DNA from: Cyanophora paradoxa CCMP329
Taxonomy: Eukaryota; Plantae; Glaucophyta
DNA: 64,000 nt
Direction: 5' to 3'
Assembly: GCA_004431415.1 (NCBI GenBank)
Contig: QPMI01000159.1
Coordinates: 1 to 64,000 of the forward strand
In this document: piece by piece, positions 25,864 through 49,467 of the stretch
How positions within the stretch are numbered: the stretch's first letter is position 1
How the letters are laid out: each line of letters starts with the position of its first letter
Notes under the pieces: generated by a model
What the model was told of the DNA's origin: nothing
Database searches by the model: none
The model's input: only the letters and a program-made list of their open reading frames with translations
Program-made: the position numbers and the translations under genes

Positions 25864-28096
25864 ATGTCGTGCCCTCGTCAGACCTCCGAGCCGGCCGGGA
25901 AGCGAGCTCGCGTCACGGCGCCGATCATGAATGCGCCGGCGCCGGCGCCGCGTGCTCCGGAGACGGCGGGGGCGCTCGATCGACTATCGGACGCTTTGCT
26001 GGTGAAGGTCTTCGAGTGTCTCGGTCTCCGGACGAGCTGGCCTCTTCGCGCCGTCTGCAGGTACGCACATACTCGCCGGCCGCGGGCGCTGCTGCTGCTG
26101 CTAGCCGCGTTGGGGCTGCGTACCTGATGCTTCGTCGCAGGAGGCTGCGCCGAGTGATCCAAGACGCGGGGTGGCCGAGCCTGGAAGTCTGGGGCGGCGG
26201 ACGGGCCTGCGAGGAGGCGCGGGCGCTGCTGGAGGTGGGACGGCTGCGGCTCGCGGCGGGCGCCCGCGTCTCGCTGCGCTCAGAGATCGGACGGCAGTAC
26301 CGCGCGGAGAGGTGCAGCGCCTTCCACGTCGACCCCCGCATGCAGCAGCAGATGGAGGGCGCGCACCGGGCCACCGCGACGGCCTTCTGCGAGCTCCTCG
26401 CCTCCGTGGCGAGCGGGCAGACCGGCGGAGCGCAGCTGCGCGGAGTGGAGGCGGACATCGGCGTCGTGAGCCTCAGCATGCCGGGGCTCGGCTTGCTCTA
26501 CAGGGCCTGCGCGGGGCCCTTCCTGGTCGGAGTCCTGCGGGCCCTCTGGCCGCCGGGCGGCGCCCCCAGCGGCCTCGAGAGCCTCGCCATCGGCTCCAGC
26601 GGCGGCCAGCTCAAGTGCGCGCGCGAGGGGGACTGGTGGCCGCCGCCCGCCGAGCTGCGGCCCGCGCTGGCGCCCTTCGGACGGCTCCGCTCCCTCGTGC
26701 TCGCCTTCGCGCACTCCGAGGAGGGCGCCGGCCCCGAGTTCGCGGCGGCGGTCGCGGCGAGCTGCCCCCTGCTCCGCGCCCTCGCGATACGCCCCCGGGC
26801 GGGGTCCGCCGACGCGGTGCTGGCCGCCCTCGCGGGGCTGGCGCGCCTCGAGCAGCTGGTCGTCGTGCTGCGGGACGAGTGCGTCGACCGCACCTTCTGC
26901 TCCGTGCGGCACGTGGAGGCCAACCACCGCTCCGACGGCCACGACGTCACGCCGGGCGTCGTCGCATTGGCCGACGGCGAGGCCGGCAAGAGCCTCAGGC
27001 GGCTCGCCTTCTCGCCCACCGGCGACCTGCGGGGGTGCGCACGCACGCTCGCGCCCCCCGGCGGCGCCCGAGTCGCCCGAGACTCACTGGCACGAGCGCG
27101 CGCGCGCGCGCGCAGGCTGGAGGGGATACAGCAGAAGGCGGAACCGGCGCGCCCCGCGATCGCCGTCCTCCGCGCCGACGGGCTGCGCGCCCTCGCGCGC
27201 ATGCCGAACCTCGAGTCCGTCGTCCCCCTCCGGGTGCGGCGCCCCGGCCCGGCCCCGTCCTTGCCAACCGCTCTCCTCACACGAGCGCGCGCGCGCATGC
27301 GGGGCAGATCGACTGGCGCACCGCCGGCGCGCCGGGCGAGCGCAGCCACGAGTCGGTCGCGGTGCTCTCCCGCCTGGCGAAGCTGCGGGAGGCCGCCGTC
27401 TTCTGCCTCTCGGCGGCGGAATTCGAAGAGGGCTGCGACGACATCGAGGCGCGCCTGTGCGCCGCGGCCGGCCACGCGCTCTCCTCCTGGCCGAACCTCT
27501 CCACGCTGCACCTCTGGTGGCGCGGGCGCAGCGCCGGCGACTTCGGCGCAGCGCTCGGCAGCCCGACCGCGCGCGCGGCCGTGGCGCACCTGCACCTGTG
27601 CGCCCTCGCGCCCTGGGGCGGCCCCGCCGTCGCGGCGGCGCTGGAGGGCCTGCCCTCCCTGCGGAGCCTGGAGCTGGAGCTGCGCCGCATGGCCGAGGGC
27701 GACGTCCTCGCCGTGCTGCGCAGCCCGGCCGCCCGGCGGGCGCTGACCACGCTGGCCATCTCCATGCGCCGCCCCCTCTCGATGGCCGAGGCCGAGGCGA
27801 TCACGGCCCTCCCCGCCCTACGGAGCCTCGTCGTGCACCCCATGCTGGCGTCGAACGAGGACATGCTCCCCATCCAGGTGCCCCCCCCCGCGCCCGCATC
27901 CGCATCCGCCCCGGCCGCCTCGAGCCCCTGTCTAAGCGCGCGCCGGCGCCAGCTGCTGCGCGGGCTCAGACCCCGTGCCGAGGTCTGGGTCGAGGCGCAG
28001 CACAGCGAGCGCCCCGCCCGCGGCTTCGGGCGCAACCGCTTCGCGCGCGCCTGCTCCGAGATCCAGAGGATGTTCCTTTTCGATCATTTAGAATGA
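25864..28096 (+). CDS. F-box / leucine-rich-repeat protein
   Basis: F-box-like LDRLSDALLVKVFECLGLRTSWPLRAVCR|RLRRVI; LxxLxL repeats (CPLLRALAI, LPSLRSLEL, LPALRSLVV). Confidence 0.8.
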
Positions 28097-28697
28097 GTGG
28101 CCGTAGCCCGCGGCTCCGCCGGCGCCGGGGCTTATCGAGCTTATCGATATCGGGGCCGGCGCCGCCCGAGGGCCTCCCAGGTCATCGGATCTTCGCGGTC
28201 AAGAGTCGCTTTTACATATTTCGTATAGTTTCGTATTCGGAAAGAGCACGTGCACATTCTCCCGAGTCGATCTTGCTACATACTTATAATTATAGCTACT
28301 GTCCGACGGTCTCGTGAGGTCTACAACTGTGTTTAAGTAAATTAAATTAGCTATAGACTGCATGTAGATATGTACAAAAACGTGCGAAAAAAACGCGCGA
28401 AATTCTTGTTGATGCAATTAAAATGCCGCAGTGCTACAGCTATAGCTACATGATATAATATTATACGCAATTAAGCTTCTAAATTCAAGGGCGATCTTCG
28501 GAATCGACGAATTAAATGAAAGCGAAGGCTAGCTCCAGGCGGATCGATGGAAAGAGCTCGCAGCCGGGCTGGTGGGGTCGTCCCGCGGCCGGTCCCGCGG
28601 CCGGTCCGGGTCGGAAATTTCGGGCGGAGAAGAGCTGCGGAGCAAAGCCTGCGGGTTCGATTCCGGGGGCAGGGAGGGGAGGGGGCAGGAAATGAAA

Positions 28698-29534: not shown

Positions 29535-32500
29535 GGGGAGAAAGATGGGTTCCGAGACGATGCGCCGGGCGAGCTCCGCCTGCCCGCAAGAAATTCATTA
29601 GTATAAGCCTTACGAGTTACGAGCGCGAAAATAAAATAAAGCTTTTTAAGCGGATGCGAGGGCCCGCGGCGCTCTCGATTCACCGGAGCGAGGCGGAATG
29701 GCGTCGTGTCCGACTCCCAAGGCCTGGACCGGGAGCTCGCGCTTGCCCCCGATCCGCTGCGGCTGCCTCCGCCCCCGCCGGCTTGTACATGACGGGTCGG
29801 CATCAGCGCCGGCGCCGCAGTCGTCGACGTAGACGCCGTCCCGCGGCCGTCGACGCGTACGCGTGAGTCGCCAGCTGCAGCGGTATCGCTTCGCGGCTGA
29901 TCACAGCCTGTCGTCGACTCTGGATCCAGCGCGATGTCAGCTGCAATGGCCGCGCGCCCACTGCAGCCGCGAACGCGGCTGCCGCTGGCGCTGACCGGTA
30001 CCTGGCCGAGCACGTAATTATACCTGACGAGCTCGAGATCTAGATCCGGATCCCCGCGGCCGGAGTTCAGGGTCCAGCCGAGAAGTTCTCAGCGGCTGCA
30101 GCCTGCAGCTGCGCAAGCAGGAACCGAGCATGCGTACGTATGTAGTAGTACAGTAGTACGAATTCTCGACGTGCTGCGAACTAGTACTACCGAGTCGACG
30201 TCCTGACTTCACTGAGTCAAGGCTTGCTTCACCGAGTCGACGTCCCGAGTCGACGACGACTCGACGTTGGTGCAGCTACTAGCCTAGTAGTACTGCTAAG
30301 CAGTGCTAACTTACAGTGCTAAGCGGCGGCCGCGGGCGCTGGACCGGAGCGCTAGCGGAGGGGGCGGGTGCCTCCCCGTCCGACGGTCGGTCTGCCAGGC
30401 TGCACGCGTACGGCTTGCAATTGCACGTGCCACGGTGGGGCGGCCGGGCGCGGCGCGCGGGGCGGCGGCCGGGCCGGGCCGGCTCGGCGGGGGCGCCGAC
30501 AGGCCTAGTAGGTGATCATCGATCCCGGCCGCGGATATCGCATCTTGGCAATCGATCATCGGATATCGCTGTCGATATCGGCGCATGCGCGCGCAGCGCC
30601 GCACTGCGGCAGCGCGCGCAGGGCCGCATGCGCATGCGCAGCCGCGCGCTCATGCTCAGCGCACGTGCAGGTCCCGTAGAGTCGGCGACGTGCTCGGCGT
30701 ACACTAAGGTAGTACCGTACTACGGTAGTACGTATACAGTATACTGCAACAGTCTGCAAGACGGCAAGAGATCCAGTACCCCCTGGTAACAGTGTCAAGT
30801 CACTGCCGCAGTGCGCATGCAGCTGTCAACCGTCGACCGTCGGACGTCGATATCGATTCGCGGCGGCCGCCGGCCCGGCCCGGCGCCGCCGCCGCGGCCG
30901 CCGCGCCCGCGGCCGGCCGCCGGCGCCGGCCCGGCGGCCGGCGCCGCCCGGCGGTTATAATTAGTCGCCGGCGCCGACTCGCCGCCGATCGCGACTCGCC
31001 GGTTTCTATTAGGGTAAAAAACTTTTCACCGGCGAATCGCCGCGGCCGACGCACGGCCGTCCACTCGCCGAGCGAGGGGCCGTGATCGTTTGACGGTTTG
31101 AGCATATGCATAATTCTCGGCATGTGCATATGCATGGGGCAGGCCCTGTTCTGATTGAGATATTTTAATCGGCTGATTGATACAAAAATGAATGAAAGGG
31201 CTTTTTATGCGGCGCGATTGGCTTACTTCTGTTTATCCGGAATGCATGCATATGGAATGCATGTTCAAGTCTTCAAGAGTCCCTTAAGCAGTGCTGTCAT
31301 TATAATGGACACGGGAGGTCGGGCATTATTTAATGAGGCATTATAATGCATTATAATGTATTATTATATTAAATACACATTAATTACGTTTAAACGCACT
31401 TTCCGCTCATCTTTGGCGCTGTGAACGCTATCTAAAGATTCTAAACGCCGCAAAAGCATGTCTAATGCATCTAGAAGCCACCTGGAGTCGTTTATGACCC
31501 TCCTGGAAGCCTTGAAGGCTGGAGATGGCCTGGAGCCCCAGGGAAGGCCTCACTGAGACTCATCCAGCACCTCAACTAAGCCTTCCGAAGCTTGTACAAG
31601 CGAGTCCCTGCGGAGCAGGAGTGGCCTTGGGTCTTGGGGACTCAAGGCGTGAGGGTGGTCGCTCTTTGTTTTTAAAACGCGTACGGGGGCCCGCAACCGC
31701 GCGCGGTTATTGGGGAAGGGTAAAACACTTCCCCTGTCCCTCTCCTTTGGGCCCAACCCTACCCCAAATCTCATTTCCCCGACCTCCGCAAAACCCGGGC
31801 CGCGCGGTACGTCCTGAAAGCGCATCCCAAAAGGACCTCGAAACCATGTCTCCCGGTCCCGTACGACCAAAGGGTGACCCAGGAACAGGCACCAACACCC
31901 GGGACAAAAACGGGTCCAGCGACGCACAGGGTGCAGATATACGGGCCAAACCAGTTCGAGGTCGTTGCGCACATCATATCCGACATTCCGTACTGCAAGA
32001 GCGAGGCCGTGCGCGAGCGCGGTAGCGCAGGAGATCGCCGCGCGTGCTAGCCAATCACGTTGCAGAGTCAGAAACGCTCTGCAAAAGTCTTTTTACGGAA
32101 CCCCCCATTCCTCTTCCCCCCCCCCACTGGCCGATGCGCAGTGGCCCCGGCCGCAGCTCCGCTCGGTTCGACACTTTCGCTCTTCTCTCGCGCGCGCACG
32201 GCAGTTTGCTATATAGCTAGCCGAGCCAGCCGCGCACGACCCAACCGCGCCAACTGAGCGAGCCGGCCGCATGCACGTGCACACCAGCTTTCGCCTACGG
32301 CCGGCCATGCCCACGCCCATGCGGCGCGCGCGCTACCGGCCCCTCGACGCCATGGCGCATGCATGCGCGAGCCGCTGCGCGCGCTGCCATGGCGCCCGCT
32401 AGCGATGTGCGCTGTGCGCGTGCACGTGCGCAATGCTTATGGATCCCCTCGGCCGCTTACCCAAGAGCAGCCAGCGCGCTCCTCCGCGCCGTGCACCTGC

Positions 32501-33812
32501 CAGCCGCGCCGACGCGCGCTGGCCCGTCGGCGCGGCTGGCCCCGTCACGGCGTAAGCCATGGCTGACATCGCTAGCTTCTGGCCACGCGCGACGTCGATG
32601 GGCCGGGGCAAGCTCGAGCTCGATGGGGACACGGCCGCGGGCACAACTTGGCAAGGTACGCATCCCCCCGCGTCCTATACCTACCTCTTCTAGAATTTCG
32701 AAAACAATCGCTGAGACTTGAAGACTCTGAGACAGCTTGCCAGTTGCCTGGCGCCGGCCCGGAGGCCATGCATATGCATATGGCCCGGCGTCCAGCCTTG
32801 ATCATGAGTTTCTTCCTTTTCCTGCTTTAGATCTAGATCTCCGAATTTGCCAAACCTTATTTAATTAAGTCGAGCCGTCGCACCTTCAGCCTAGCTGTTG
32901 TTTCAATTTCCCTTCCCCGGACCCAACTGACGCGCTCAGCAAGTCAGTGGCCCTTTATTACTAGTATATATATTTACTGCTGCAGCTGTTGAGCCCGGAG
33001 AGGACTACCGTAGTACGCGGCTGTACGCCGCCTAGTAGCTTCTAGCCTAGTAGCTTGGTCTAGCTAGCGCCAGCGATTCGTGCCGGCGCCACGGTGCGCC
33101 ACGCCGCGCGCGCCGCGCGCGTGGCGGTCTCGTACGCGTATATCGATATCAGCTGCAGTGACTCTGAGCTGAGCGAAGCGACGCGTGACGCGCGCGGCTC
33201 GGTCACGTGCACGGCCGCGGTGACTCCAGCCTACCAGCCGGGTACAGAGGCTTTTTGCAATTTCCATCGGCGAAGGGGAAGCAAGCTGGAAGCCAATGAT
33301 ATTTGCGCTTGTCCGTGAATGGGGCGATTGAGCTTTTTGGCCAATGGCGATCGGGCTTCACGCGAACAATTTCGTTCGTACGTGCTGTTAGTGCTTGTTA
33401 GAGGTGTCACATTTGAAAAGTAGCGCCGCCATCGTGCTCCCTAGGGTCGAAAATGGGTACCTAGGTCCAAAAATTTTGTCTATAAAATCAAGTTGAAGTT
33501 TGACACAAGATAGGCACAGACCTAAGGGCCTCTCCTTTCCCCAAGGCCGAAAGCCTTCCTAAGTGTTAAGGAAGTGTTAATCGGCTTATATAGAACGTTT
33601 GAGCGTTGATCGTGCGCCCCCCTTTAGCTCCGCCACGCCTAAGGGATGGAGTCGATGTACCCCCCCTCCAACTCGTCAACCTCTCCTAAGGCAGCAAGAA
33701 CCGCTCCGAAAGTGATTTAAAGCGTTCCGGCGGCTCTGTTTAGCTGTTAGAAGGTCGGAGATCAACTTCTACGCTCTAGATTCGCCGAAAAACGTCGCGC
33801 CGAAAATAACCA

Positions 33813-35880
33813 TTTTTTTTTTGAGAGACTACGGTGGGGCGAACCCCCCGTAGGTAGTGATATTAAAGACAACAAAGCAATCACAAATCAAAGATACAGT
33901 AAACTAGCACAAAATATATACAGAATCAAGAGGGATCACGAGAAAGGACACGATCAGAAGAACGCAAAAGATAAGGAGAACGAGCACGAGGAGAAGGAGT
34001 AGAAGAGCTCAAGGGCGTCGATGCAGAAGTACTAGTCACACTAGAACGACGAGGAGCACGGGGACGCAGCAAATAAGGAGAACGAGCACGAGGAACTACA
34101 GTCGAAGACGAAGATCTAGACGAAGACGACAAGACAGAGCTAACAGCAGAACTAGAAGACGTAGTCGCAGGAGGCAAAGGCGGTAGAACAGTAGGAGAGG
34201 CGAAACGTAGGACACCACTAGAGGGGAAAGTCGAAGCTGGCGGAGTGTCTAAACGGAATCGAGATTGTAGAGTTGGTAAAACAATGGACGGCTGAAGACT
34301 AATCTGAGGAACTGGGGACGACACGAGGAAAGGGGCAGAGCTCGGGTGCAGACTCGGAATCGGCAGTATAAGAGGAGGGCGAAACGCAAGCCAGTAGTGA
34401 CAGGGAAGGCAGACGATGGGCTGAACCAGGCGGGAGAGGCAAATATAGCGAAGTAGAAGAGAGAGAAGGGTACACACGAGGAACGTCACCATACACAAAA
34501 TACTCGCTGCCAAAAACTATACGGTCTGACGGTCGCTGAAGATAAAGAGGCGGAACTGCCTGAGGGCTAACAGTGAGAGATGGAGGAGGAAGAGGCAGAG
34601 CTAACGACAAAGGGAACGGAATCAAAGGTACAGGGAAGGCATGGAATACACGAGGAACTGGAAGGTGGAGGGGGCCAGTGCTCCTAACTAACATCGATGA
34701 AGCATCTGATGGAGGTGACGGCAAAACAACTGAGGGTAAACTAAGTTGAGGTGAAGCGAAGATTGATACAAGACTATCATGAATCAAAGGGGCCATGCAG
34801 GAACCGGCGGGCGAGGTGGATCTGGCGGGACAGCCAGAGGGGAAGCCGAAGGTACAGGAGAGGAAAGCCGCAGGCGCCGAGACACATGGACAGGGGACGG
34901 ATCGGCATCGGGAGGCAAGGTTGAATTCGACGGAGACCGGGGCGGCGGATTCGTGAAACGGAAGGTATCAGAGAAGGACTAGGGGGGGCAGGGAAGTACG
35001 GAGCCGCTGAGCAGGTGGCGACGGTGAGGGTGCAGGGGAGCGAATCCGTCGCAAAGTCGGAACAGGCTGACGGGGCTCGGCATATGTAGCCGCAGCTGCA
35101 GGAGCTGGAGCAAGCACTGGGGGTGCCGGATCCGGAGACTGGAGGCGGGGGCGCTGGGCAGGAGGCACAGGATCTGGAGGATTCTCTGAACTAGAGGGGG
35201 TTCGAGGTCGGCGAACGCCACGGGCGTTAGCAGGATGTTTATCAGCCCGAACATGACGGTCACGATCAGCAGAAGACTGAAAGTTCTTCCCACAAATAGG
35301 GCATATTAATGTGGAGGCAGAAGCGGCGCTAGCGCTAGCATCGGCAGACGAGCTCAAACGAGAACTCGAGGGAGCCGGGACCGAAGCTGTATCAGCGCTA
35401 GCAGATGGCCTCGCAATGTGCTGAACTTGAGGATTCACGCCGACGCCATTAACTGTAGTAGCAGGCCTAGGGGTAGCGACTGCAGGGGGCCCGGGACCGC
35501 GACTGCTGGGGGCCCGAGCGCTGTAGAGGGATAGCTCCGCGCACAGAAAAGAAGCTCGCATCAAAAATAGATTGAGGGGGCTAGGGCGGTCACGTGACTC
35601 AGGGTTTGAACCATCGTAATCAGAGCCCTCCCCTAAATGCCGTAAACGAAGAAGCTCAATGCGCTCGACAGCAGGAGGCAACGTAATCTCGAGAATATCC
35701 AGAAAACGTTTCCACAGGTTTAGCAGAGCATTAACGGAGTACACTGGTACCCGCTCAGCAAGTAAATTATCGGGTGAGAGATATGCACGGGACAGCTGAA
35801 AAATTGCGTAAATGCCCGCCAAAATATAACCGAGATACCGAACACAGAAATCGGCATCCACAGAAGATGTGATCAATGTC
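33813..35880 (-). mobile_element. Poly(A)-tailed non-LTR-type retroelement, copy 1 (~2.07 kb, probably 5'-truncated)
   Basis: T10 at 33813-33822; 13-bp TSD CCGAAAATAACCA (33800-33812, 35881-35893); near-identical to 47517-49270 and rc of 37551-37649; lower GC than host genes. Confidence 0.9.
33926..35880 (-). CDS. Element-encoded C2H2 zinc-finger, Pro/Ser/Arg-rich ORF (broken by homopolymer frameshifts)
   Basis: CPICGKNFQSSADRDRHVRADKH; track ORFs 34968-35900, 34299-34796 and 33926-34513 can be joined at G/C runs; T-ending codon bias; C-terminal PRARSPYLLR twice. Confidence 0.6.
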
Positions 35881-36502
35881 CCGAAAATAACCACCCACAT
35901 TAAATAATGTCCATTATATATATATATATTTACGCCGGTTTATAATTAATGTATACGTACTTAATGGACATTAAATAATGTCATTAATTAAAAACGTACA
36001 TTATAATGACAGCACTGCCCTTAAGCTTGCCAAGTTGTGCGAATCGGCCTAGGCCTACAAAATAAAAGGCTGCAATGAGAATCACACCTTCGATTCTCGC
36101 CCGTTCCAATTCTAGATCATGCATATGCCCCTAAAATTGCTGGCTAAAATGCTTGCAAATTTATATTTGCTACTGAATGGCAAGCTAGAAAAGAAATTAA
36201 TAGCCCGACATGTACGAGGTTTCGGCTGTACGGGTGCCACTGTCGGGTGGCAAGTTACACTGGCAACGGGCCAAATTAAGTTTTCCCGGCGGAGTCGATC
36301 CTGCTCTACGCGTACGGTTAAACGTTAGGGCGCTGGCGGCCCAGTGGCGGGATCCCGAAGGCGAATCCGATGATCAAGGATACTAGTATCATGAATCATG
36401 ATCAATCAGGGACGTGGACGGACGGAAGTGCTGAAGCCACACGCTCCGGCCGCGGGAGCCGGCGCTGATCGTGGAGCTCAAGCCTGCTGGGAGCAGCGGC
36501 TG

Positions 36503-38073
36503 CTAAGGGGCGGGCGCTGGGGCGGAGGGGGCGGTCGCCTCCCCGTCGGTCTGCGCGGCTTGCGCGAGGGGCGGCGGCGGGGCGGCGGCCGGCCCCGGCT
36601 CGGCGGGGGCGCCGACGGATCCGCGGCGGGGCGCCCACTTCGAAATGACGGAGAGCAGGAGCGAGCGCGCGACCGGCTTGCTGCGCACGCGCCCCGAGCC
36701 CCGCCGGACACGTTCAGCGAACCAGCCCCAGCCTCTGGCGGGAAGGGCGGGCCCGGTCCCCGGGGCGGCTCACCTGAGGTAGTCCGACATGCCGGAGCTC
36801 ATCACGCCGGCGCGGTCTGCGCGCGGCAGCGGCTCGGGCTCGGGCTGTGGAAAATCAAAGCAATGAAATCAAATTTGAGGCACCGTGGGAGGAGGAGAAG
36901 GCTGTGCAGGCGACGATGGGGGTCGGGGAGGCGAGGCCGAGGCCGCGCTCGACGCCCCGGATCGCCCGCGTCGCCCCGTGCCCGTCTAACCGCGGCATCT
37001 GCACCTGCGCGCGGCGTCTGTAAAGGAGGGGGGAGGGGGAGGAGGGGGTACGCACGTCCATGAAGATGACCTGAGGGGGGGGGGGGGGGGGGGGCGGTCA
37101 GCGAAATTTCTGGGGGAGGGCGGGCGGGGCGGGGCGGGGCGGGGCCGGCTCACGTCGTAGATCTGCGAGGGAGGCGTCAGGGAGTTCAACGAAGAGGGAA
37201 AAGGGGGGGGGGGGGGGAGGGGGGGGGAAGGAACCGTCGCGTCGGGGGGTAGGGAGCCGCCGCGCTCCGCGGCGAGCTGCCGGGCGCGAGCCTGGGCGAG
37301 AGAAGGGGTTCGCGTGAATGAGAGGAAGGCGAAACGGGAGAAACGGAATGGATGGGACCAGTAGGATCGGGTGCCTAAGAGCTAAAGCGGAGCGCCGCGC
37401 TGCGGTCCGACCGGCTTGACGGCTGGAGCTAGACGGCTGGACGGCTAGACGGCTGGAGGTGAACCGCGTCGCGGCGCCGGTCGGCGCTGGACTGGAGCGG
37501 GAGCGGGGGCCCCGAACTCTTACATACGATAATAATGGAGCTCGTATAAATAGTTTACTGTATCTTTGATTTGTGATTGCTTTGTTGTCTTTAATATCAC
37601 TACCTACGGGGGGTTCGCCCCACCGTAGTCTCTCAAAAAAAAAAAAAAATAAATACGGTTTAAACAAAATGCTGGCGGGGGCCCCGCGGGCCCCGAGCTC
37701 TTACATGCGATGTCGTCGGGCCCCAGGAATAATGGAGCTCATATAAATACGGTTTAAGCAGAATTCTAAGGGTGAGTTGGGGGGGGGGAGGAGGAGGGGG
37801 GGTACCTCGAACTGGGCGACGGCGTCGGCGCCGTCGACGGCGAGGGAGACGACGTGCCCGTCGTTCTGCAGGAAGGCCGCCAGCACCCGCCGGTTCATCT
37901 GCGGAGGCGCGAGCGCGGGCCCGCCCCGCATCAGCATCAGCATCTGATATCCCTTGCGGCGGGATATAGACGCAAGGGATATAAGATACTGATGCGGGGC
38001 GGGCCCTCCCCAGATGAACAGGGAGGGGCCAGGAAGGGCGCGGGGGGCGGAGCAGGAGTTCCGCGTGTGTTGG

Positions 38074-38107
<34 letters not shown>

Positions 38108-41030
38108 AGGAGCGGGTAAAGAGAGTGAGGCCATTACAGGGTCTTTTTTATCCTGTCTCTTATATCGTTTGAGGTCCTCGATGTCGTCGACTATGTAATT
38201 ATGTATCTTATACCCTGCATTTTGTATCTTGTTTATTGTAGCTCACTGGAGGCCGTCTCATAAGGTCTCTTGAATCTTGTGTATGTGTCCTGCATCTCAC
38301 ACACGCGGACCTCGACGACGTCGACGACGACATATCACATATCTTTTGAGGACCTATTGTGACTTGTATCTTATATCCCTTGCATCTTGTATCCCTTTAT
38401 CTTATATCCCTTGTGTCTTATATCTTGGCGGACCTCGACGTCGTCGACGACGAGTATGTGGAGGGCCTCGGTCCGCGACGCGCTCCGCCCCTTGCCCCCG
38501 GCCCCCCGGCCCCGGCCCCCCGCCCCGCCCTCTGCTGCCGGGCGGCCGGCCAGCGTGAGGGGAGAAGAAGGGGGGGGGGGGGGGGGGGGGGGAGCAGCGG
38601 GGCGCACCGGAGGGGGAGGAGGAGGAGGAGGAGGCGAGGGCGCTCATGGAAGCGGGGGCCTGCCGCTGCGCCCGGCCTGCCCCGCCCCGCCCCCGTCAGG
38701 CCGAGCGCGAGGAGGAGCCGCGGGGGCGCCGGCCTCTCCATCGCAATGCTGTAAGACGACAGCGAGATCTATCACTTCTAGCGCTCCGTCTTATGTCAGC
38801 GTTTTGGAGGAGGAGAAGTGTAGGGCGGGAGCGGGTCCCGTCGCTACTGTTGCGGGGCCTTCTAATCGCGCGGGGGTTCTCTGCGAGGGGGCCTTCTAGA
38901 GCGCCACCGTGCCTCTCACGCGCGATAGGAAGCTTAAGAAGATTAGAAGGCATCACGTGCGGGGGCGCACTGCTGGGACCCTTGAAGGAGTTGCCGGAGG
39001 AGGAGAATACGTCAGCGGGGCCCCAGGCGCCCAGGGCGGGGCCCCCGGCGGCCCCGGCCCCGGCCCCGGCGCCGGCGGCGGGGCCGGCGAGGTGCAGGTC
39101 CGGCATGGAGGCGATGGCGGGGCCCGGCGCGGGGCTCGCCGGGCTCCCCGGCGAGGCGGGGGCGGCCTCCGGGGGTACGAGAGCGCCGAGTCGGGGGTGG
39201 CGGAGCCCGGCCCGGCGCCGGCGCCGGCGCCGAGGCCGCCCCGGAGGGCCCCCGCAGCCGCCTCCGACTCGCGCAGCTTGTCGATCTTCGCGAGGAGCAG
39301 CGGCTTCCGCAGCGGCTGCAAGGGCGTCGGCGAATTTCGAAGAAAGGGGAAAAAGGGCTCCGGCGGGATTCGAACCTTGGAGAGGTACTCGTCCATGCCG
39401 GCCGCGAGGCACCGCGCCTCGTCCTCGGCCGTCGCGTTCGCCGTCAGCGCCACCACAAAGTGCCGCTGGGGGGTACAGGGTTGGAGGGGCGGGGGGTAGG
39501 GGGGAGCGAAGAAGGGAGCGGGGGTACCGGGAGCCCGCGCTGGGCCTCGAGGGCGCGGAGGGCCCCCGTCGCCTCGTACCCGTTCATCACCTGAGCGGCG
39601 GTTGGGCGCCGCACCCGGAAGGGAGGGGGGTACATGGGACCGACGCACCGGCATCTGCGGGAAGAAAGGACGGGCGACGAGCGGTGAGGCAAGGAGGGAG
39701 CGGCGTGAGCGGGCGAAAGAAAGAAAGAGGGGGGGGAAGGGGGGGGGGGGGTAAGGACCTCGCAGTCCATGAATATGACCTGTCCGGGGCGGCGACAGAG
39801 TCGGAGCAGTCAGAGGCGGCATCAGAAAGGAGGGCGGGGCGGGGGCGGGGCGGGGCGGGCGGGCGGACGTCGAAGGCGGGGCGGCCCGGGGGCGCCGCCT
39901 CGAGGCGGCCCGGACGGCCGCGAGGGCCCGCTCCCCGTCGTCCGCCACGGCCACCTGAGCCGATCAGGAGGGAAGGGGAGGGAGGGGGGGGGGAGGGGAG
40001 GGGGGGAGGAGGGGGGGTACGCACGGAGTGGCCGTCGCGGGAGAGCATGGAGGTCAGCACGCGCGCGTTCACCGCGTTGTCTGCCCGCCCCCCGCCCGCG
40101 TTGAGAGGGGCGGGAGGTATGGCGGGAGGGGGGGCGGGTCGGGGCTAGGGCGCTCTAGCTCTAGATCTAGGTCTAGGTCTAGGTCGCCGGAGAGCGGGCG
40201 GTGCGGGCGGCCTCTGCCACCCTCTGCCACCCTCTGCTGGCTGTGAAACCCTCTGGAACTAGATCGCTGCGGGCCTTTAGAAGGGGGGGCGGGGCGGGGG
40301 GCCCCTTTACTGTACCCTCGACGACGAGGATGGAGAAGGGGCGGCCGGGGGGGCGCAGGCGGCCCGTGGAGGACCCCGGCTTGAACGAGTCCGAGAGGCC
40401 GGCGCCGCCGCCGTCCAGCCCGCTGAGCACCCCGCTGCCGGGTGCCGGGCGCCGCGTCAGCGAGCTAGAAGGGGAAGGGGGTTTAGGAGCAGTTGTCGGA
40501 TTGCAATTGTCCTCAGAGAGGAGGGCGCGTGGGGTGGCGCGGGTGGGCAGTGGGAGAAGCCCTTTGGAAGAGGAGGGGGCCCGCGAGATCCCAAGTGGAG
40601 AGAAAGGCAGCGGAAAGCACTCGGCCGTTCTCTCCTAGACGGAAGGAGGCGTCTAGTAGAGAACGAGACAGCGGGTACGCCAAAAAGAGCGTAGACGGGT
40701 CCCTCCCGGGTGGCCGGCGGCGTCTAGCCTTCTCTGCCCGTGCCGCCCGGCCCGGCCCGGCCTCGGGGGCCTCCCCCGCACCTGAAGGAGACGCGGGAGC
40801 GCGCGGCGTCGAGGTCGCGGCCGAGCGTCCCCGAGGAGAGCGTCGACTCCCGCGGCGTCGCCAGCGCCAGCTGCCGCCTGCCCCGCCGCCCGCCCCGCCC
40901 GCTCAGAGGCCAGCATCACAGAGCCGAGCGGGGCGGGGCGGGGCGCGGCGGGCGCACGCGCTGGGGTCGGAGACGCCGGCCGCCGCCTCGTGGGCTCCCG
41001 GCCCGGGGCGAGGGAGCCCAGGCCCGACAT

Positions 41031-41080
<50 letters not shown>

Positions 41081-44000
41081 CGGGGGCCCCAAGCAGAAGA
41101 CCCTCGCTCTGCCCCCGCCGCCCGCTCAGAGACGAGAAAGAGAGGCGAGGAGGGGGCGGGAAGCTTTGAGGGGGCGCACGGCGGGGCGGCCGCGGATTGA
41201 GGGCGAGCGGGCGGCGGCGTCGGTGTAGAGGAGAGAGCCGGAGGCGAGGACGGGCGGCGAGGGCGACACGACGAGAGAGGCCTCCGAGCGGGGCCCGACC
41301 CCGGCGCCCTCGCCGCCGCCGCCGCCGGGCGTTCCCCCCTCCTCCGCCGCCTCCAGGGGCGCGGGGCGGAAGGGCATGTGGAACCAGAAGGTGGAGCCCT
41401 GCGCGGGCGTAGCGCAGGGCTTAGAAGCAGCCAGAAGAACGAACTGGCAGGACGGGCCTGGCCGACGCGGGAGGTGCAGCCGATGTCGCCGCCGGCGCGG
41501 AGGACGATCTCGCGGGAGATGGCGAGGCCGAGGCCCGTGCCGCCGGGGTCGGGGGCGCCCCCGGGCAGCCGACGCACACGGAAGAACCGCGTGAAGAGCT
41601 GCGCGGGGCCCGGGCGCGGCGTTGTTAGGGTCGGGAGGGGGCGGGCGGGCGGGGCGGGTCGGACCTGCGCCTGGGACTCGGCGTCGATGCCGGGGCCCGA
41701 GTCCTGCCGCCCCGCCGGCCCCGCCAAGCGTCAGCTTCAAGCGGGGGAGCGCGGCTCGGGAACCCTCGAGGCGCAGCTCTCTACAGCCCGGGGCGGGAGG
41801 GAGGGGGAAGGGCGGCGCGGAGACCTGGATCTCGAACATGACGGAGACGGCGCCCGGCTCGATGGCCGCCGCCTCGCGCACGTACACCCGCACCGCCACC
41901 TCCCCCTGCCGGAGGGAGAGAGACGAGGGTCGCCGCGGGCGCCCGAGCGGGGGCGCCGGGGGCGGGGCGGGCTTTCCCTGCAACGAATCTCCCTAACACT
42001 AGGAAAAGATGTGATTCTTTGACGAACCTGGTTGGTGTACTTCACGGCGTTGCCCACGAGGTTGAGCATCCTGCGGGAGGAGGCTCGACGCGGCGGCGCG
42101 GGGCGAGCGGCGAGCGGCCGCGTACACTTGTCGCAGGCGGTCTGCAGGGGCGCGTCGGCGCGGCGGAATCGGGAAGGACGAGGGGAAGGAAGGGGGGGGG
42201 GGGGGGGCGGACCGGGGTCGCCGGAGACGACGGGGGTATGCGCTCGTCGAGGGCGATCCCCAGCCGCACGCCCTTGTCCGCCGCCTGCGGGGCGGGCTCG
42301 AGCGGGCGGGCGGGCGGGCGGGGGGGGGGGGGGGGGGGCTGGCGCCTTCTGCTGGACGATCTTGACGGCCGTCTGCGCCGCCGCCCGCACCGACATCGGC
42401 ACGCTCTCTGCAATCCAGCCGCGTCAGCGACGAAGGAAGGAAGAATGAGAGGCGGGCGCGGGGGGTACGGGCGCACGGAGCTCGATGGCGCCGGCCTCGA
42501 TCTTCTGGAGGTCCAGCACGTCGTTCACCTGCGCGCGGGCTCAGCCGAGGAGGAGGAGGGCGGGGGGAAGCGGCGGGGCGGCTCGCTCGCCAGGGAGAGG
42601 AGGTGCTCGCCGGAGAGCGCCGCCGCCTCCACGTACTCAAACGCTGCGCGGCGTAGTGGGCGGGGCGGAGGCGGAGGCGGGGGCGGGGCGGGCGGTGCAA
42701 GCAGCGGTGACGGTGGCGGGCGGTGCTAGCAGCGGGCGGTGCTAGCAGCGGTGCTAGCCTCCACGTACTCGAAAGCTAGGGCGGCGTAGTGGGTGGGCGG
42801 AGGCGGAGGGGGCGGGGAGGCGGGGCGGGGGGCGGTGGGGCGGAGGCTCCGGCGGGGCGGGGCCCGGGGCGCACCGTCGGACGGGAGCTCGCACTCGCGC
42901 GCCAGCTGCAGCATGCCTGGAGCGCGGCGCGGCGCGGCGCGGCTCGAGCCGGGGCGGGGCGGGGCGGCGGAGGTGGGCAGGGGGGGAGGGAAGGCGCGCA
43001 CCGAGGATGCCGTTGAGTGGCGTGCGCACTGCAAAGAGCGCTCACAGCTCAGGTGGGGGCGGGGGCGGAGGGGCGGGGCGGGGGCCGGGGCGGGGCGCGC
43101 TCTCGTGGGACATGGTGGCGAGGAACTTGCGCGTCTCCTCGCTCCGCACCTCGATCTCCAGCTGCGCCCGCCCCGCCCCGCCCCGGCTCGGCCTCAGGAA
43201 CCCGACCAAAGGGAGGAGGGGGCGGGGTAGGGTGGGGCGGGAGGGGAAGAGAGGGGGCGGGGCGGGGCGGGGCGGGCGGACCTTGGTCTTGCGCTCGGCG
43301 AGGAGGGTCTTCAACAGCGCCGTCTCCGTCGACGAGAACTCCCGGAACGCCAGGAACCTGGGGGGGTACGCTCTCAGGGGAGGTAGGGGGCACGGGGGGC
43401 GCGGGGCCCGCTCGCCTCCTCTGGAGGTCTCCGACCTGAAGGGGGGGGGGGGGGGGGGGCGGAGCCGCGCGCGATCGGTCCCGGGAAGGGGAAGGGGTAG
43501 GGGAGTTCAAGGGGGTACCGCGTTCTCGAAGGCGACGAGCTCCGCGAGACCGGCGCCCAGCGCCATCGCCTGCCGCTGCTGCGGGAGGAAGGGACGCGCG
43601 CTCAAGGGGGGAAGGGTAAGAGGGGTACGGGGCGCCGGGGGCCGCACGGCGCGCTGGCCGGCGGACTGCGCCGCTGCGCCGTCGAACTGCGAAGGGCGGG
43701 CGGGCGGGGCGTGTGTCAGAGGCCCCGCCGGCGGCGCCTGGGCCTCGCCGCGGGCGACCCCCCGCACCTCCTCCGTATCCGATGTGGCGTTGGACATCGT
43801 CGTCGCCACGGAGCCGTGCCGCTACGCGCGCGCGGGATCGGCGCGGGCGGCGGGCGGCGCGGCGCGCCGGCGCGTCTGTCATCGTGCGCGCACCGTCGGA
43901 CGACGGACGGTGTGCGCCTGGGGGCGGGCCGGCGGCGAGCAGGCGGGGCGCGGCCGTCAGAAACGCAGGCCAAGCCACGCGAAGCGAAGCGGGGCGGGGC

Positions 44001-46946
44001 GAGCTGGGCGGGGCCGCGCGGGCGCACGAGCGGCCGAAGCGGATGCCGAGCCACGATCGGCGGGCCCCCGCGTGCGGATTCGCCTCCGCAGGCATCGCCG
44101 CAGCCGCCGCCTCCGCCGCCTGCGCGCCGGCTCAGCGCCGCGCGAGCGCTCGAGCTCTGGGGCGGGGGCCCGGGTGCGGGGCGCGCCGCCTCGATGGCGA
44201 TGGCCGGGGCCGGGGCCGGGAAGCCGGCCATGGAGGGCGGCGCGATCCGCGGCCCGTCCCCCTGCGACCCCGGCGTCGCCCCCTGGCCCCCGTTCGGCCG
44301 GTCAGAGCACGGGGAGGAGCGTGGGTTGGGGGAGCGGGGGGGTACGCGCACGTTCTCGGTGCTGGCGCGCTGGAGCTGCTTGTCCCTCTTCATCTCCCGC
44401 GTCGTCTTCGTGATCGTCTGGAGGGGGTACGGGACTGAGGTGCTGGGGGAGGAGGGGGGGGAGGGGGGGGGTACCTCGACGAGGACGCGGATGGAGGCGC
44501 GCAGCTCGGAGAGGGGCTGCGGGGGCGCTCAGGGCGGGGGCGGGAAGGGGGCGGGGGCGGGGGCTGGCCTTGGAGATGCGCCAGGCGAAGACAGCGGATA
44601 CGGCGACGCAGAGGACGAGCCACAGCGCGTTCGCCACCGCCGTCCACCGCGCCGACTCCTGCCGCGGCGCGGTTCCGAGGGCGGAATGAACGGGATGGGG
44701 GGTAGGGGGTAGGGGCACCTGCAGGCGGGAGAGGACCTCGGACTGGGGTACCGCGATGTACCTGCAGGGGGCAGTGAGGCGGAGGGGGGGGCGCTGCTCA
44801 AGAGGGGCGGGGGCGGGCGGGCGGGCGCGCATTTGCCAGCGAAGGTCCGGCGACATGGAGATGGACTCTGCGGTGGAGGGAAAGAGGGAAGGAGGAGGGC
44901 GCTCAGGAGCGGGCGCGCCTTGGGGGAGGGGGGGGGGAAGTGGGCGGGGGTACCGCGAAGGACGAAGTAGGACCTGCCACCGCTGCCGGCGGTGATGAGG
45001 ACCCCGCCGGCCCCCGCCGCGCTCCCGTCCTGCCCCCCCGGCCAGCCCCCCGCGTGAGTCACGGGACCGAGATCTGATGGTGGGGGGTACGGCGTGGGCG
45101 CGCACGGCGGCGCCGGCGATGTCACGGATGGTCTGGGAGGGGCTGGCCGAGGCGGGGTACGGGGCGTTGGCCGTGGTGTTGTAGATGTCGGCGAGCTGGG
45201 CCGTCGAGGAGGCCAGCAGCGCCCCTGCGCGTGCCGCGCGCCGTCGGGCCGGGCGGGGGCGCGATCGGCTCGAAGCTCAAGCTCAAGGGCGGCACCGGCG
45301 CTGGTGGTAAGGAAGACGTAGGAGCCGGGGAGGGGCGCCAGGCCGGCCAGCACGCGCGAGAGCTGCCCGATGTTCACGTTCGCCTGCGCACCGCCCGCCG
45401 CGTTCGCCTGGGCAGGAGGCGGGGCACGAGGGGAGCGGGGGTACGTGCGCACGCCCACGCCGCCGAGGCGCTCGCCCGCGGTGAAGGCAGAACTGGGGGG
45501 TACGCGCAAAATCAGGTGATCCGGGGGGCGGGAGGGGGGTGCGGGGCCGGGGCGGGGGACGGGGCGCACGAGGCGGGGTCGACGGCGGGGGCGGCGGCGT
45601 CCGGCGCGGGGGCCCGGAAGACCGCAGCGAAAGTGACCATCAGGTTCGCCAGCTGGTCGGCCTGCACAGAGAGGGAGGGGTTCATCGAGGCGCAGGCGGC
45701 CGGCCGGGGGGCGGGGCGGGGGGTACCAGCGGGTTGTTGGAGAGCCGGACCGAGGTCCACGTGGCGTTGTTGGGGGAGGCCATCAGGACGGGGTACCTGT
45801 TTCCGGGACGGTGAGGGGGGTAGGGGTATAAATAATGGGGGAAGGGGCGGGGGCGCACCAGTCGTTGGGGCGCATACGGAAGACAGAGGGGCCGGACTGA
45901 GGCGGGGGCGCTTCAGGGGTACGTGGTGCGGCGGGAGGGAGGGGGGGCGGGAGGGGAGGGGGTACGCACGACGAGGCGGATGGGCTGGCCCCGCCCGTCG
46001 GAGGAGTGGGCCATGAATGTCGTGCCTGCAGGCCGGCCCCCCCTCGGCAAGGGCGGGGGCGCGCGCGCGCGCCAGACAGGGGGTACAGGGTGCGCACCCG
46101 AGAGGTTGTAGGACTGGTAGCCGTAGGGGCAGACGGGGGTACCCTGGGGGCAGCGCTGTACCCCGTAGAGGTCGGTGGCGTTCCAGTAGATGTAGTTGCT
46201 GAGGACGGCGGGGTACAGGTCGAGGTTCTGCTTGAGGGTGGCCCACGTGACGCGCCAGACGCCCAGCGAGACCCGCCCGGCTTCGAGGTCCGCCACGGTC
46301 CGCATCACGAGCCGCTGCGCGTACTGCGCGGCCACGGCGAGCCCGGCCGATGAGCACGCACACTGCGGGATGGGGAGGGAGGGGAAGCGGGGCGCGCCTG
46401 CAGGTGGTGCTCGACCTGGACGCGGATCTCGCGCTTGATGCCCGTCATCAGGCTCTCCACCAGCACCTCGTGGCCCCGCAGCTGCGCATGCGCGGCGCGC
46501 GCGCGCTCCTCAGCCGCGCCGCGCTGGCCATGGGACGCCGGACGCCAAGTCGTGAGGGGCGCGCGCTCGGGACGCACCGCGAGGAAGTACGTTAGGCCCC
46601 AGCTGAAGGCGACCGCGCCGGCGACCTGCAGGATGGCGAGGACCACCGACACGCTCCGGATGCTGACCCAACGCGACCCGCGCCCCCGCCGCTGCTTCTT
46701 CCGCGCCGCCGCGGCCGCCGGATGGCTGGCAGACGCCTCCCGCACATTCAGCGGGGCCTGCAGCGGTGTTGGATCTGTGCGCGCATCGAAACTTTAGCCG
46801 AGCGACGCTGCGCCCGCGCGCCGGAGGTGGGCGGACGCGCCATGGCCGTCCCGCTGGAGCCCGGTCGAAGGCGGCGCGGTGGGCGGCAGTTGTGTAGAGA
46901 AAGAGAGCGCTGCTTTAGGGGATGACGGGCCGCCCGGCCCGGCCAT
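36503..46946 (-). CDS. Membrane-bound hybrid sensor histidine kinase with extracellular sensor, HisKA, HATPase_c and two receiver domains
   Basis: TM1 [25 protein letters not shown]2 [16 protein letters not shown]; H-box [17 protein letters not shown]; [10 protein letters not shown]; DSGPGI; [10 protein letters not shown]; REC1 ILVVE|DNAVN..IFMDCE|MP|VMNGYE..ALTAN..K|P; REC2 ILVVDDVE|MNRR..IFMD|[11 protein letters not shown]; stop 36503; start uncertain. Confidence 0.92.
37551..37649 (+). mobile_element. Retroelement copy 3: ~100-bp 3' fragment in an intron of the histidine kinase gene
   Basis: Reverse complement of the 3' end of copies 1 and 2; A15 tail; TSD ATAAATA (37546-37552, 37649-37655). 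Confidence 0.9.
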
Positions 46947-47516
46947 GCCGCCACCGCCACCCGCGTCGGCCCGGGCGGCGAAGCGATGCAAATAGCTCCG
47001 GGAGCCGCGCTGCGGCTGCGCGCGAGGGCTGCCGTTCGTGGGCGGAACTTCGGAAGCTCACCCTGACGGTCTAGACAGCTATATAATAGCTAGCTAGATC
47101 GTGCGCATGCGCGTAACTCGGCCGCTGCTGCTCTGCTCCGTTGCTCCGCGCACAGCATTTCTCTCCCCCTAGCTAGGCTGGGTCCCCCCCCCCCCTGCTC
47201 ACAATTGCAATTTCCAATTTCCAAGCCTTTGTTCGATGACGTCGTCACAAGCCGCGTCCCAGCGCGCCATTGGCGGCAATTTGGCGCGGCTTGCTACTAG
47301 TTGCTAGGAGGTTGCCGAGCGATCCGCATTCATTTGAATCGTTGATACCGGTGGTCTGGACCGTCGGTACGTACTGTACGCGTTAATCATTGAATCGGCC
47401 TTGGGGGGGAGGGGGGGGGTAAAGGAGAGGCCCTGGTTGGCGTCGAGTCGTCGACTCGCGATCGATCGGCGACTTCGAATTCGTTTTCCGAAGTTCCGGT
47501 TTTCAAGTTTTAGATC

Positions 47517-49270
47517 TTTTTTTTTTTTGAGAGACTACGGTGGGGCGAACCCCCCGTAGGTAGTGATATTAAAGACAACAAAGCAATCACAAATCAAAGA
47601 TACAGTAAACTAGCACAAAATATATACAGAATCAAGAGGGATCACGAGAAGGGACACGATCAGAAGAACGCAAAAGATAAGGAGAACGAGCACGAGGAGA
47701 AGGAGTAGAAGAGCTCAAGGGCGTCGATGCAGAAGTACTAGTCACACTAGAACGACGAGGAGCACGGGGACGCAGCAAATAAGGAGAACGAGCACGAGGA
47801 ACTACAGTCGAAGACGAAGATCTAGACGAAGACGACAAGACAGAGCTAACAGCAGAACTAGAAGACGTAGTCGCAGGAGGCAAAGGCGGTAGAACAGTAG
47901 GAGAGGCGAAACGTAGGACACCACTAGAGGGAAAGTCGAAGCTGGCGGAGTGTCTAAACGGAATCGAGATTGTAGAGTTGGTAAAACAATGGACGGCTGA
48001 AGACTAATCTGAGGAACTGGGGACGACACGAGGAAAGGGGCAGAGCTCGGGTGCAGACTCGGAATCGGCAGTATAAGAGGAGGGCGAAACGCAAGCCAGT
48101 AGTGACAGGGAAGGCAGACGATGGGGCTGAACCAGGCGGGAGAGGCAAATATAGCGAAGTAGAAGAGAGAGAAGGGTACACACGAGGAACGTCACCATAC
48201 ACAAAATACTCGCTGCCAAAAACTATACGGTCTGACGGTCGCTGAAGATAAAGAGGCGGAACTGCCTGAGGGCTAACAGTGAGAGATGGAGGAGGAAGAG
48301 GCAGAGCTAACGACAAAGGGAACGGAATCAAAGGTACAGGGAAGGCATGGAATACACGAGGAACTGGAAGGTGGAGGGGGCCAGTGCTCCTAACTAACAT
48401 CGATGAAGCATCTGATGGAGGTGACGGCAAAACAACTGAGGGTAAACTAAGTTGAGGTGAAGCGAAGATTGATACAAGACTATCATGAATCAAAGGGGGC
48501 CATGCAGGAACCGGCGGGCGAGGTGGATCTGGCGGGACAGCCAGAGGGAAGCCGAAGGTACAGGAGAGGAAAGCCGCAGGCGCCGAGACACATGGACAGG
48601 GGACGGATCGGCATCGGGAGGCAAGGTTGAATTCGACGGAGACCGGGGCGGCGGATTCGTGAAACGGAAGGTATCAGAGAAGGACTAGGGGGGGCAGGGA
48701 AGTACGGAGCCGCTGAGCAGGTGGCGACGGTGAGGGTGCAGGGGAGCGAATCCGTCGCAAAGTCGGAACAGGCTGACGGGGCTCGGCATATGTAGCCGCA
48801 GCTGCAGGAGCTGGAGCAAGCACTGGGGTGCCGGATCCGGAGACTGGAGGCGGGGGCGCTGGGCAGGAGGCACAGGATCTGGAGGATTCTCTGAACTAGA
48901 GGGGTTCGAGGTCGGCGAACGCCACGGGCGTTAGCAGGATGTTTATCAGCCCGAACATGACGGTCACGATCAGCAGAAGACTGAAAGTTCTTCCCACAAA
49001 TAGGGCATATTAATGTGGAGGCAGAAGCGGCGCTAGCGCTAGCATCGGCAGACGAGCTCAAACGAGAACTCGAGGGAGCCGGGACCGAAGCTGTATCAGC
49101 GCTAGCAGATGGCCTCGCAATGTGCTGAACTTGAGGATTCACGCCGACGCCATTAACTGTAGCAGCAGGCCTAGGGGTAGCGACTGCAGGGGGGCCCGGG
49201 ACCGCGACTGCTGGGGGGCCCGAGCGCTGTAGAGGGATAGCTCCGCGCACAGAAAAGAAGCTCGCATCAA
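47517..49270 (-). mobile_element. Retroelement copy 2 (~1.75 kb, more 5'-truncated than copy 1)
   Basis: T12 at 47517-47528; collinear with 33813-~35564; differences are mostly single-base indels in homopolymers. Confidence 0.9.
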
Positions 49271-49467
49271 TCGGCCTTGGGGAATTCGACTTCTGGGTTT
49301 TTATAAAATTAGATACCGGTGGCCATGGCCATGGCCCGCGGTGAGCGCGGTGCATGCATATGGGCCCGCGGCCGCAGGGTAGGCGGCCGTAGGCCCGCGC
49401 GCGACTTGAGAGACTTGTTGAGGACTTGCCGTGTGGAGGTCGCGCGATTCGAATATTAACTCGCGGC

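Follow-up and report, generated by a model that had tools for sequence, protein, structure and literature searches.

Three poly(A) retroelement copies in Cyanophora paradoxa are probably truncated inserts of an L1-like LINE with a long, C2H2 finger-bearing ORF2 tail

Within the stretch of the Cyanophora paradoxa assembly analyzed here (64 kb; hereafter, the window), three poly(A)-tailed copies of one retroelement show coding sequence for a C2H2 zinc finger and a Pro/Ser-rich tail, with no reverse transcriptase (RT). What kind of element leaves such copies? The first-pass annotation had offered two answers: a non-autonomous coding element conceptually similar to HAL1, or a LINE with an unusual extra 3' open reading frame (ORF). 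Both drew on the premise that autonomous LINEs usually have RT or nuclease sequence within their final 2 kb. The copies and their boundaries are as follows.

33813..35880, minus strand: copy 1, a 2068-bp 5'-truncated probable LINE insert (ORF2 tail, 3' UTR and A10)
33813..33822, minus strand: 10-nt poly(A) tail ending copy 1
33800..33812: target-site duplication of copy 1, left, CCGAAAATAACCA
35881..35893: target-site duplication of copy 1, right, CCGAAAATAACCA
~37551..37649, plus strand: copy 2, a ~97-bp insert (end of the 3' UTR and A15)
37546-37552 and 37649-37655: target-site duplication of copy 2, ATAAATA, 7 bp
47517..49270, minus strand: copy 3, a 1754-bp 5'-truncated insert with A12

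As first annotated, the three poly(A) copies have a common 3' end, identical in all three, and were cut at different 5' points (2068, ~97, and 1754 bp from that end). Pure A tails of 10, 15, and 12 nt in copies 1, 2, and 3, respectively, lie directly at the insert ends; no other A/T run in the 64 kb reaches 9 nt. The 13-bp duplication around copy 1 is perfect. A 7-bp duplication previously assigned to copy 3 belongs instead to copy 2; no duplication adjoins the ends of copy 3, around which the sole shared 7-mers lie 11 and 33 bp off. Because their flanks differ, the copies represent separate insertions. Over 1,752 bp, copies 1 and 3 differ by two substitutions and eight one-base indels, and all eight indels are changes in the length of G-runs. 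The A tail, target duplication, and 5' truncation support the earlier proposal of target-primed reverse transcription.

The identity of the coding sequence was revealed by a single full-length relative. A HMMER search against 1.84 billion representative proteins returned one relative covering the non-finger part (P0002; E = 1.6e-32), a protein of 2,084 amino acids encoded by one uninterrupted ORF on a 6,697-bp public contig (L001, from run SRR31724264). P0001 and the other weak HMMER matches were rejected as relatives, being generic multi-finger proteins. The whole 2 kb of copy 1 matches P0002 residues 1343-2084, from first codon to stop (tblastn, E = 8e-105), and the two share the finger, the islands in the tail and the terminal RSPYxLR motif. 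The first codons of copy 1 align at residue 1343 (60% identity), inside a conserved block. At the DNA level, similarity between the family of copy 1 and its relative is detectable across 215 bp only.

P0002 has the domains expected of an L1-type ORF2 in its N-terminal part: an AP-type endonuclease (Exo_endo_phos, residues 7-241, E = 1.7e-12) and an RT (RVT_1, residues 559-821, E = 7e-27), followed by a weak zf-RVT match below the Pfam cut-off (residues 1269-1300, E = 0.0021). Its CX2C..H..C block matched a set of 12 L1-type C-termini with 69% probability (hhalign), and the best solved match of the protein was human LINE-1 ORF2p (E = 1e-42). Pfam gave no RNase H match to P0002. No convincing ORF1 was found in the 382 nt that precede ORF2 on L001, a contig that may be cut at its 5' end. 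The nearest database ORF2 proteins are mostly ~1,150-1,290 amino acids long, compared to 2,084 in P0002; an ORF2 of this type runs ~640-770 amino acids beyond the usual end. No other protein matched this extra portion by HMMER, and a word-based search with the P0002 tail found P0002 alone. Measured against this relative, copy 1 comprises the following coding features.

35577..35879, minus strand: conserved helical segment of ORF2 corresponding to P0002 1343-1440 (61% identity, E = 9e-32)
35235..35303, minus strand: single C2H2 zinc finger, CX2CX12HX5H, CPICGKNFQSSADRDRHVRADKH
34431..34775, minus strand: conserved island in the Pro-rich tail (50-55% identity to P0002 1755-1885)
33929..34123, minus strand: Ser/Arg/Pro-rich C-terminal end with two RARSPYLLR repeats
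33926-33928, minus strand: stop codon TGA

The C2H2 motif, Pro/Ser richness, paired RARSPYLLR repeats, and T-ending codons of the first-pass annotation are all present. Both AlphaFold runs used two-sequence alignments, and confidence was low outside the helices and the finger. The helical segment was modeled as helices at pLDDT 59-77, has a dN/dS of 0.14, and possibly represents the final part of the canonical L1 C-terminal domain. The finger matches C2H2 Pfam families below their cut-offs (E = 0.02-0.05). Its spacing is the same in copy 1 and P0002, with DRDRHVRADKHP identical in P0002, and it was modeled as two short strands and a helix at pLDDT 83-84; both the spacing (within CX2-4CX12HX3-5H) and the predicted β-β-α fold are those of a C2H2 zinc finger. 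The tail island has a dN/dS of 0.16, and AlphaFold predicted no fold for it. The C-terminal end has a pI of 12 and a third-position T fraction of 0.6-0.76, and its repeat units lie in the DNA at 33937-34006 and 34039-34108. Third-position T tracks the reading frame along nearly all 2 kb of copy 1 and climbs toward the 3' end in both this element and that of P0002. An alternative in which the tail is a noncoding, pyrimidine-rich UTR left open by chance was rejected on the grounds of T periodicity in one frame at a time and low dN/dS. Judging from sequence comparison, parts of the tail are under purifying selection, with a dN/dS of ~0.15 in the conserved islands.

The frame itself is broken. Followed by homology and third-position T, the coding frame of copy 1 shifts at least five times, each time at a G/C run, and copies 1 and 3 share an in-frame TGA (34968-34970) in one frame and a TAG (34299-34301) in another. 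With these frame breaks and shared stops, an intact tail is demonstrable in no copy. Of the earlier description of a visible ORF without RT, the absence of RT and nuclease sequences from the copies holds, but there is no one single ORF. Introns were rejected as the cause of the frame changes, as these fall at G/C runs that differ between copies 1 and 3; the continuous ORF of P0002 also disfavors introns. The breaks may be assembly errors, and the confinement of one-base differences to G-runs cautions that this assembly may contain non-biological frameshifts in its GC-rich repeats. At its upstream end, the coding frame of copy 1 is open to the first base without its own start codon; the ATG of the 310-amino-acid ORF called here sits in the flank, outside the copy.

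Downstream of the stop codon, the element ends in a short structured region.

33823..33925, minus strand: 3' UTR, 103 nt from the ORF2 stop to the poly(A)
33829..33853, minus strand: 3'-terminal hairpin, its 10-bp stem carrying one bulge and capped by a UUCG loop

The hairpin lies 6 nt ahead of the poly(A) and folds at -17.2 kcal/mol (z = -3.56; 0 of 200 shuffled sequences fold as well). The end of L001 keeps the 5' arm of the hairpin and the upstream ACTACCTACG, giving a shared 3' UTR motif of ACTACCTACG.GGGGT. The 3' UTR had no match in Rfam. We suggest that the conserved hairpin is a putative recognition site for the RT.

Other searches add little to this picture. No RT or nuclease domain was detected in the copies, nor any RT or endonuclease homology in the 64-kb window, and eight large flanking ORFs had no Pfam match. 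The tail is also free of any protease domain. A word-based protein search with the 303-amino-acid ORF returned nothing; its length window excludes the 2,084-amino-acid relative, and its candidates were probably swamped by low-complexity words. Exact look-up of an internal ORF and two metagenome scans, one by protein pattern and one by 30-nt DNA word, also returned nothing, and the protein atlas gave generic C2H2 clusters only. There is no full-length copy of the copies' own family in the window, and public searches yielded only the 45-60% identical relative.

Taken together, the three copies are very probably independent, recent, 5'-truncated ("dead on arrival") inserts of one autonomous L1-like LINE family. 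In the proposed mechanism, the LINE endonuclease would nick the target, the RT would prime at the poly(A) terminus of the element RNA, and reverse transcription would halt early, after ~2,070, ~1,750, or ~100 nt, leaving inserts that keep the 3' end only. Beyond the RT and zinc-knuckle region, ORF2 would continue as a short helical segment, then an Ala/Pro/Ser linker, a single C2H2 finger, and finally a basic Pro/Ser-rich tail of ~400-490 amino acids. Short conserved islands dot this tail, which is predicted to be disordered and ends in RSPYxLR; the ORF2 stop would fall only 103 nt ahead of the poly(A). On this reading, no RT is visible in the copies because ORF2 extends far beyond the RT and zinc-knuckle region, and the long ORF2 tail is likewise why the premise of RT or nuclease sequence in the last 2 kb fails for this family. 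The family's own full-length copies presumably have the layout of P0002. Points against an L1-like LINE are the lack of such a full-length copy, the broken frame, and the absence of a target duplication at copy 3.

Could the copies instead belong to a non-autonomous coding retroposon, HAL1-like in concept, that encodes only the finger/tail protein and is mobilized in trans by a LINE with a common 3' end? RT is missing from all three copies in the window, and the 3' UTR hairpin is common to the autonomous relative, much as SINE/LINE partners share tails. However, each of the three copies has its own 5' end, the frame of copy 1 runs open to its first base with the ATG in the flank, and its first codon aligns at residue 1343 of P0002, within conserved sequence. 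We consider this half of the first-pass proposal very unlikely, and these observations do not support it. The other half, a LINE with an unusual extra 3' ORF, comes near the mark; in the sole full-length relative, however, the extra 3' coding sequence continues ORF2 and is not a separate ORF. A further alternative, an autonomous LINE with the tail as a third ORF behind ORF2 and the tail protein made alone, gains some room from the fact that the 5' end of the tail region in the copies' family lies outside the visible sequence. Against it, the P0002 tail is in frame with the RT with no stop between, and copy 1 keeps an open frame across the block equivalent to P0002 1343-1440, all the way to its truncated 5' end; it is an improbable arrangement, if slightly less so than the HAL1-like one. 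Processed pseudogenes of a host zinc-finger gene would also have a poly(A) tail, target duplication, 5' truncation, and no RT. Yet the sole homologous sequence belongs to the C-terminal portion of an ORF encoding endonuclease and RT, the T-ending codon usage contrasts with the ~68% GC host sequence around it, and an element-type 3' hairpin is conserved, making a host gene origin extremely unlikely.

The truncated L1-like LINE inserts favored here can be compared to three known systems. HAL1 elements, non-autonomous L1 derivatives in mammals, have a fixed ORF1-only structure. Like HAL1, the copies are poly(A) retroelements that show coding sequence and no RT. In contrast, what they encode is the tail of ORF2, homologous to the inside of an RT-bearing ORF, and they are random 5' truncations. 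A HAL1-like element would have a defined 5' end and a start codon before its only ORF, with ORF2 absent from every member; the copies have three different 5' ends, and copy 1 lacks its own start codon. Annotation should mask the copies as truncated LINE inserts rather than record them as zinc-finger genes or as a new class of coding retroposon.

A functional parallel may be L1Tc, an ingi-clade LINE of Trypanosoma cruzi, whose C-terminal C2H2 region (C2-L1Tc) acts as a chaperone of nucleic acids (PMC2805920). Two fingers and an RNase H domain are present in L1Tc, which has no classical ORF1. As in L1Tc, a C2H2-type finger with basic flanks lies at the 3' end of the LINE coding sequence. Unlike L1Tc, there is one finger here and P0002 has no RNase H match, which places the element outside the ingi/L1Tc type with its RNase H and two C2H2 fingers; the Pro/Ser tail is also much longer. 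There is no detectable sequence similarity between the two, and the likeness is functional, by inference only. The finger and basic tail may putatively bind element RNA or cDNA in a chaperone-like manner. We speculate, tentatively, that the 550-640-amino-acid basic tail, predicted to be disordered, could with its finger be a built-in replacement for ORF1p in an ORF1-less L1-like LINE, binding and chaperoning the element's RNA, perhaps with the conserved UUCG hairpin as a handle, while conserved short motifs would recruit host factors. Such an arrangement would be lineage specific, so far seen only in this alga and one public contig. If the tail does replace ORF1p, the minimal requirements of a LINE for RNA packaging could be studied in a compact system.

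LINEs of the L1 superfamily combine an APE endonuclease, an RT, and a C-terminal Cys/His knuckle, with zf-RVT in plant-type L1. P0002 has an endonuclease, RT, and candidate CX2C...H...C knuckle in L1 order, and the inserts in the window, as in L1, end in poly(A), are truncated at the 5' end, and vary in their target duplications. Compared to the nearest database ORF2 proteins, P0002 adds 640-770 amino acids comprising a C2H2 finger and a predicted disordered basic tail, and a structured 3' hairpin precedes the poly(A) in the copies' element. For transposon biology, the family would be a further case of an L1-like ORF2 extended at its C-terminus by a very long addition that is under selection, largely disordered by prediction, and equipped with a C2H2 finger.

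Three poly(A)-tailed inserts in the window share one 3' end:

33813-35880, minus strand: copy 1, a 2068-bp insert whose 3' end is A10
33800-33812 and 35881-35893: perfect 13-bp target-site duplication, CCGAAAATAACCA, flanking copy 1
~37551-37649, plus strand: copy 2, only the last 85-97 nt of the element, with A15
47517-49270, minus strand: copy 3, with the same 3' end as copy 1 and an A12 tail

The common 3' end and tail described in the first-pass annotation are borne out: a 36-nt word taken at the element's 3' terminus has exactly three matches in the window (0 expected), and the only A/T runs of at least 9 nt in the 64 kb are the three insert tails. The 13-bp duplication of copy 1 was likewise present, but a 7-bp duplication previously assigned to copy 3 is ATAAATA and flanks copy 2 instead; no duplication adjoins either end of copy 3, whose 5' side ends 316 bp short of that of copy 1. 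Segmental duplication is ruled out by the unrelated flanks, which show the insertions to be independent. The inserts, themselves ordinary, carry the hallmarks of target-primed reverse transcription. Following established L1 biology, the LINE endonuclease would nick the target, reverse transcriptase (RT) would prime on the poly(A) and, by stopping early, would leave inserts of the three lengths.

Only 2 substitutions and 8 single-base indels separate copies 1 and 3 across 1752 bp, and with so few differences the family is very young. All 8 indels are length changes of G-runs of 3-6 bases; together with the indel-to-substitution ratio, this suggests homopolymer assembly errors rather than true mutations.

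The surrounding DNA has several features of its own. Copy 2 is enclosed by a local host repeat of ~190 bp (37503-37552, 37675-37749; units GGGGGCCCCG...CTCTTACATRCGAT...AATAATGGAGCTCRTATAAATA), and its insertion site, ATAAATA, is present again at the end of the next repeat unit. Just outside copy 1, 4 bp past its right target duplication, lies an imperfect 34-nt inverted repeat centred on (TA)n (35897-35981), overlapped by a second 14-nt inverted pair; it could represent a small element able to form a hairpin, or simply AT-rich intergenic DNA. Many pure G-runs of 20-30 nt lie on the plus strand at 37073-49778 (e.g., near 37075, 38075, 38575, 43443, and 49750); long pure G tracts are the sites at which long-read assembly is least reliable. 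The motif GGGGGGTACGCAC (at most 1 mismatch) occurs 9 times, compared to 0.2 expected, mostly ending long G-runs, at 37043-50580 on the plus strand and also at 5479 and 20434 on the minus strand. Read on the opposite strand, as GTGCGTAC plus a C-run, it looks like the intron starts of host genes that lie on the minus strand around these two copies, 2 and 3. Low-GC islands (41-53% in a ~70% GC background) lie at 8000-12500, 15000-15500, 28000-28500, and 31000-31500, and ORFs at 7.5-12.5 kb look non-coding. GC content of the window is similar to the 67.6% of the published Cyanophora paradoxa PacBio RSII assembly (PMC6704402).

Since the element strand is rich in pyrimidine (58-73% C+T), the long open stretches in all three of its frames mean little by themselves. 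At any one point, T is concentrated in a single codon position (up to 0.5-0.76), and the enriched phase tracks one frame over almost the whole 2 kb, ending at TGA 33926-33928. Codon-position T and conservation in a distant relative (P0002, below) together show the 2-kb insert of copy 1 to be protein-coding. The coding character and T-ending codons of the ORF noted at first pass are therefore real, but its frame is discontinuous, and the 310-aa ORF starts at an ATG in the flank, outside copy 1. Frame changes fall at G/C runs 35576-35580, 35508-35512, and 35485-35489, three changes that restore the net frame, so that a 303-aa frame is open by chance. Further changes occur at 34982-34988 and 34789-34792, and the last between ~34440 and 34227. 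In copy 3, the correct frame is kept at some of these sites and lost at others.

Pfam found nothing in the copy but a sub-threshold C2H2 finger. When the first 225 residues were searched with HMMER against 1.84 billion representative proteins, there were 22 matches, and all but one were generic multi-finger proteins. The exception, the 2084-aa ORF2 protein P0002, alone aligns beyond the finger (E = 1.6e-32; query 2-170 to P0002 residues 1344-1509). P0002 and its alignment to copy 1 comprise the following:

P0002 residues 7-241: AP-type endonuclease
P0002 residues 559-821: RT
P0002 residues 1269-1300: weak zf-RVT knuckle
Helical segment: 61% identity to copy 1 over 102 aa
Zinc finger: 66% identity over 29 aa
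Pro-rich tail island: 50% identity over 131 aa

The last three are the blocks that survive in tblastn with low-complexity masking on. Overall (tblastn, E = 8e-105), the first codon of copy 1 aligns with residue 1343 and its stop with residue ~2070-2084. Both proteins share the CX2CX12HX5H finger spacing, an identical DRDRHVRADKHP helix, and an RSPYxLR motif in their last residues. The best solved-structure match of P0002 is human LINE-1 ORF2p (E = 1e-42), and hhalign pairs its CX2C..H..C block, at a probability of 69%, with the C-terminal knuckle found in 12 L1-type ORF2 proteins. The P0002 ORF is uninterrupted on L001 (6697 bp), a contig from the assembly of a public run. L001 ends within a 3' UTR that has ACTACCTACG.GGGGT in common with the window copies; DNA similarity between the two elements is detectable over only 215 bp (68%). 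Outside the three copies, nothing in the window matches P0002 at the protein level or L001 at the DNA level. These alignments show that the inserts are 3'-terminal pieces of an element with a single full-length relative, an endonuclease/RT LINE. With synonymous sites near saturation, dN/dS was 0.14 in the helical segment and 0.16 in the tail island; the tail is therefore protein sequence that the LINE maintains under selection, rather than junk behind it.

That no RT is visible holds for the 64-kb window, where RT and endonuclease homology was found nowhere, but not for the relative, in which RT lies upstream of the tail. ORF2 proteins closest to P0002 are mostly ~1150-1290 aa and co-linear with its first ~950-1080 residues. 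From its position, the helical segment at 1343-1440 plausibly completes the usual L1 C-terminal domain; if so, the P0002 extension is ~640 residues, or ~770 when counted from the knuckle. In the window family, ~550 aa separate the end of the helical segment from the stop, which places a 5' cut made 2 kb from the 3' end downstream of the RT. Judged from sequence, the family is L1-like with an unusual, apparently lineage-restricted ORF2 extension, present among the 1.84 billion representatives in one other protein only, P0002; no description of such a tail was found in the searchable, incomplete literature.

Structure prediction and folding gave the following:

Residues 1-85 of the copy 1 frame: predicted helices (pLDDT 59-77)
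Next ~100 residues: no predicted structure
C2H2 finger: predicted beta-beta-alpha (pLDDT 83-84), upholding the finger proposed at first pass
Conserved tail island: no predicted secondary structure (pTM 0.12)
33829-33853: 10-bp hairpin, capped by a UUCG loop, that terminates the 3' UTR; UCUCUC and poly(A) follow

Disorder of the tail is a prediction only, because both structure models use two-sequence alignments. The P0002 tail behind the finger contains 24% Pro and 16% Ser (pI 11.6), and the C-terminal 121 aa of copy 1 contain 29% Ser and 12% Arg (pI 12.0). The 103-nt 3' UTR had no Rfam match. Its hairpin (-17.2 kcal/mol, z = -3.56; 0/200 shuffles fold as well) is conserved as far as its 5' arm, the only part visible in L001, and may be the RT recognition site.

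More tentatively, the finger and basic tail may bind nucleic acid. Such a tail would make sense if the family were without ORF1. No convincing ORF1 was found in the 382 nt upstream of ORF2 on L001, which is possibly cut at its 5' end; positions 1-382 hold only a hydrophobic, implausible 134-aa frame overlapping the ORF2 start. The trypanosome LINE L1Tc offers a parallel: the basic region at its C-terminus, which carries C2H2 motifs, acts as a nucleic acid chaperone (PMC2805920), and the finger and tail of the window family resemble it in joining a C2H2 motif to basic sequence.
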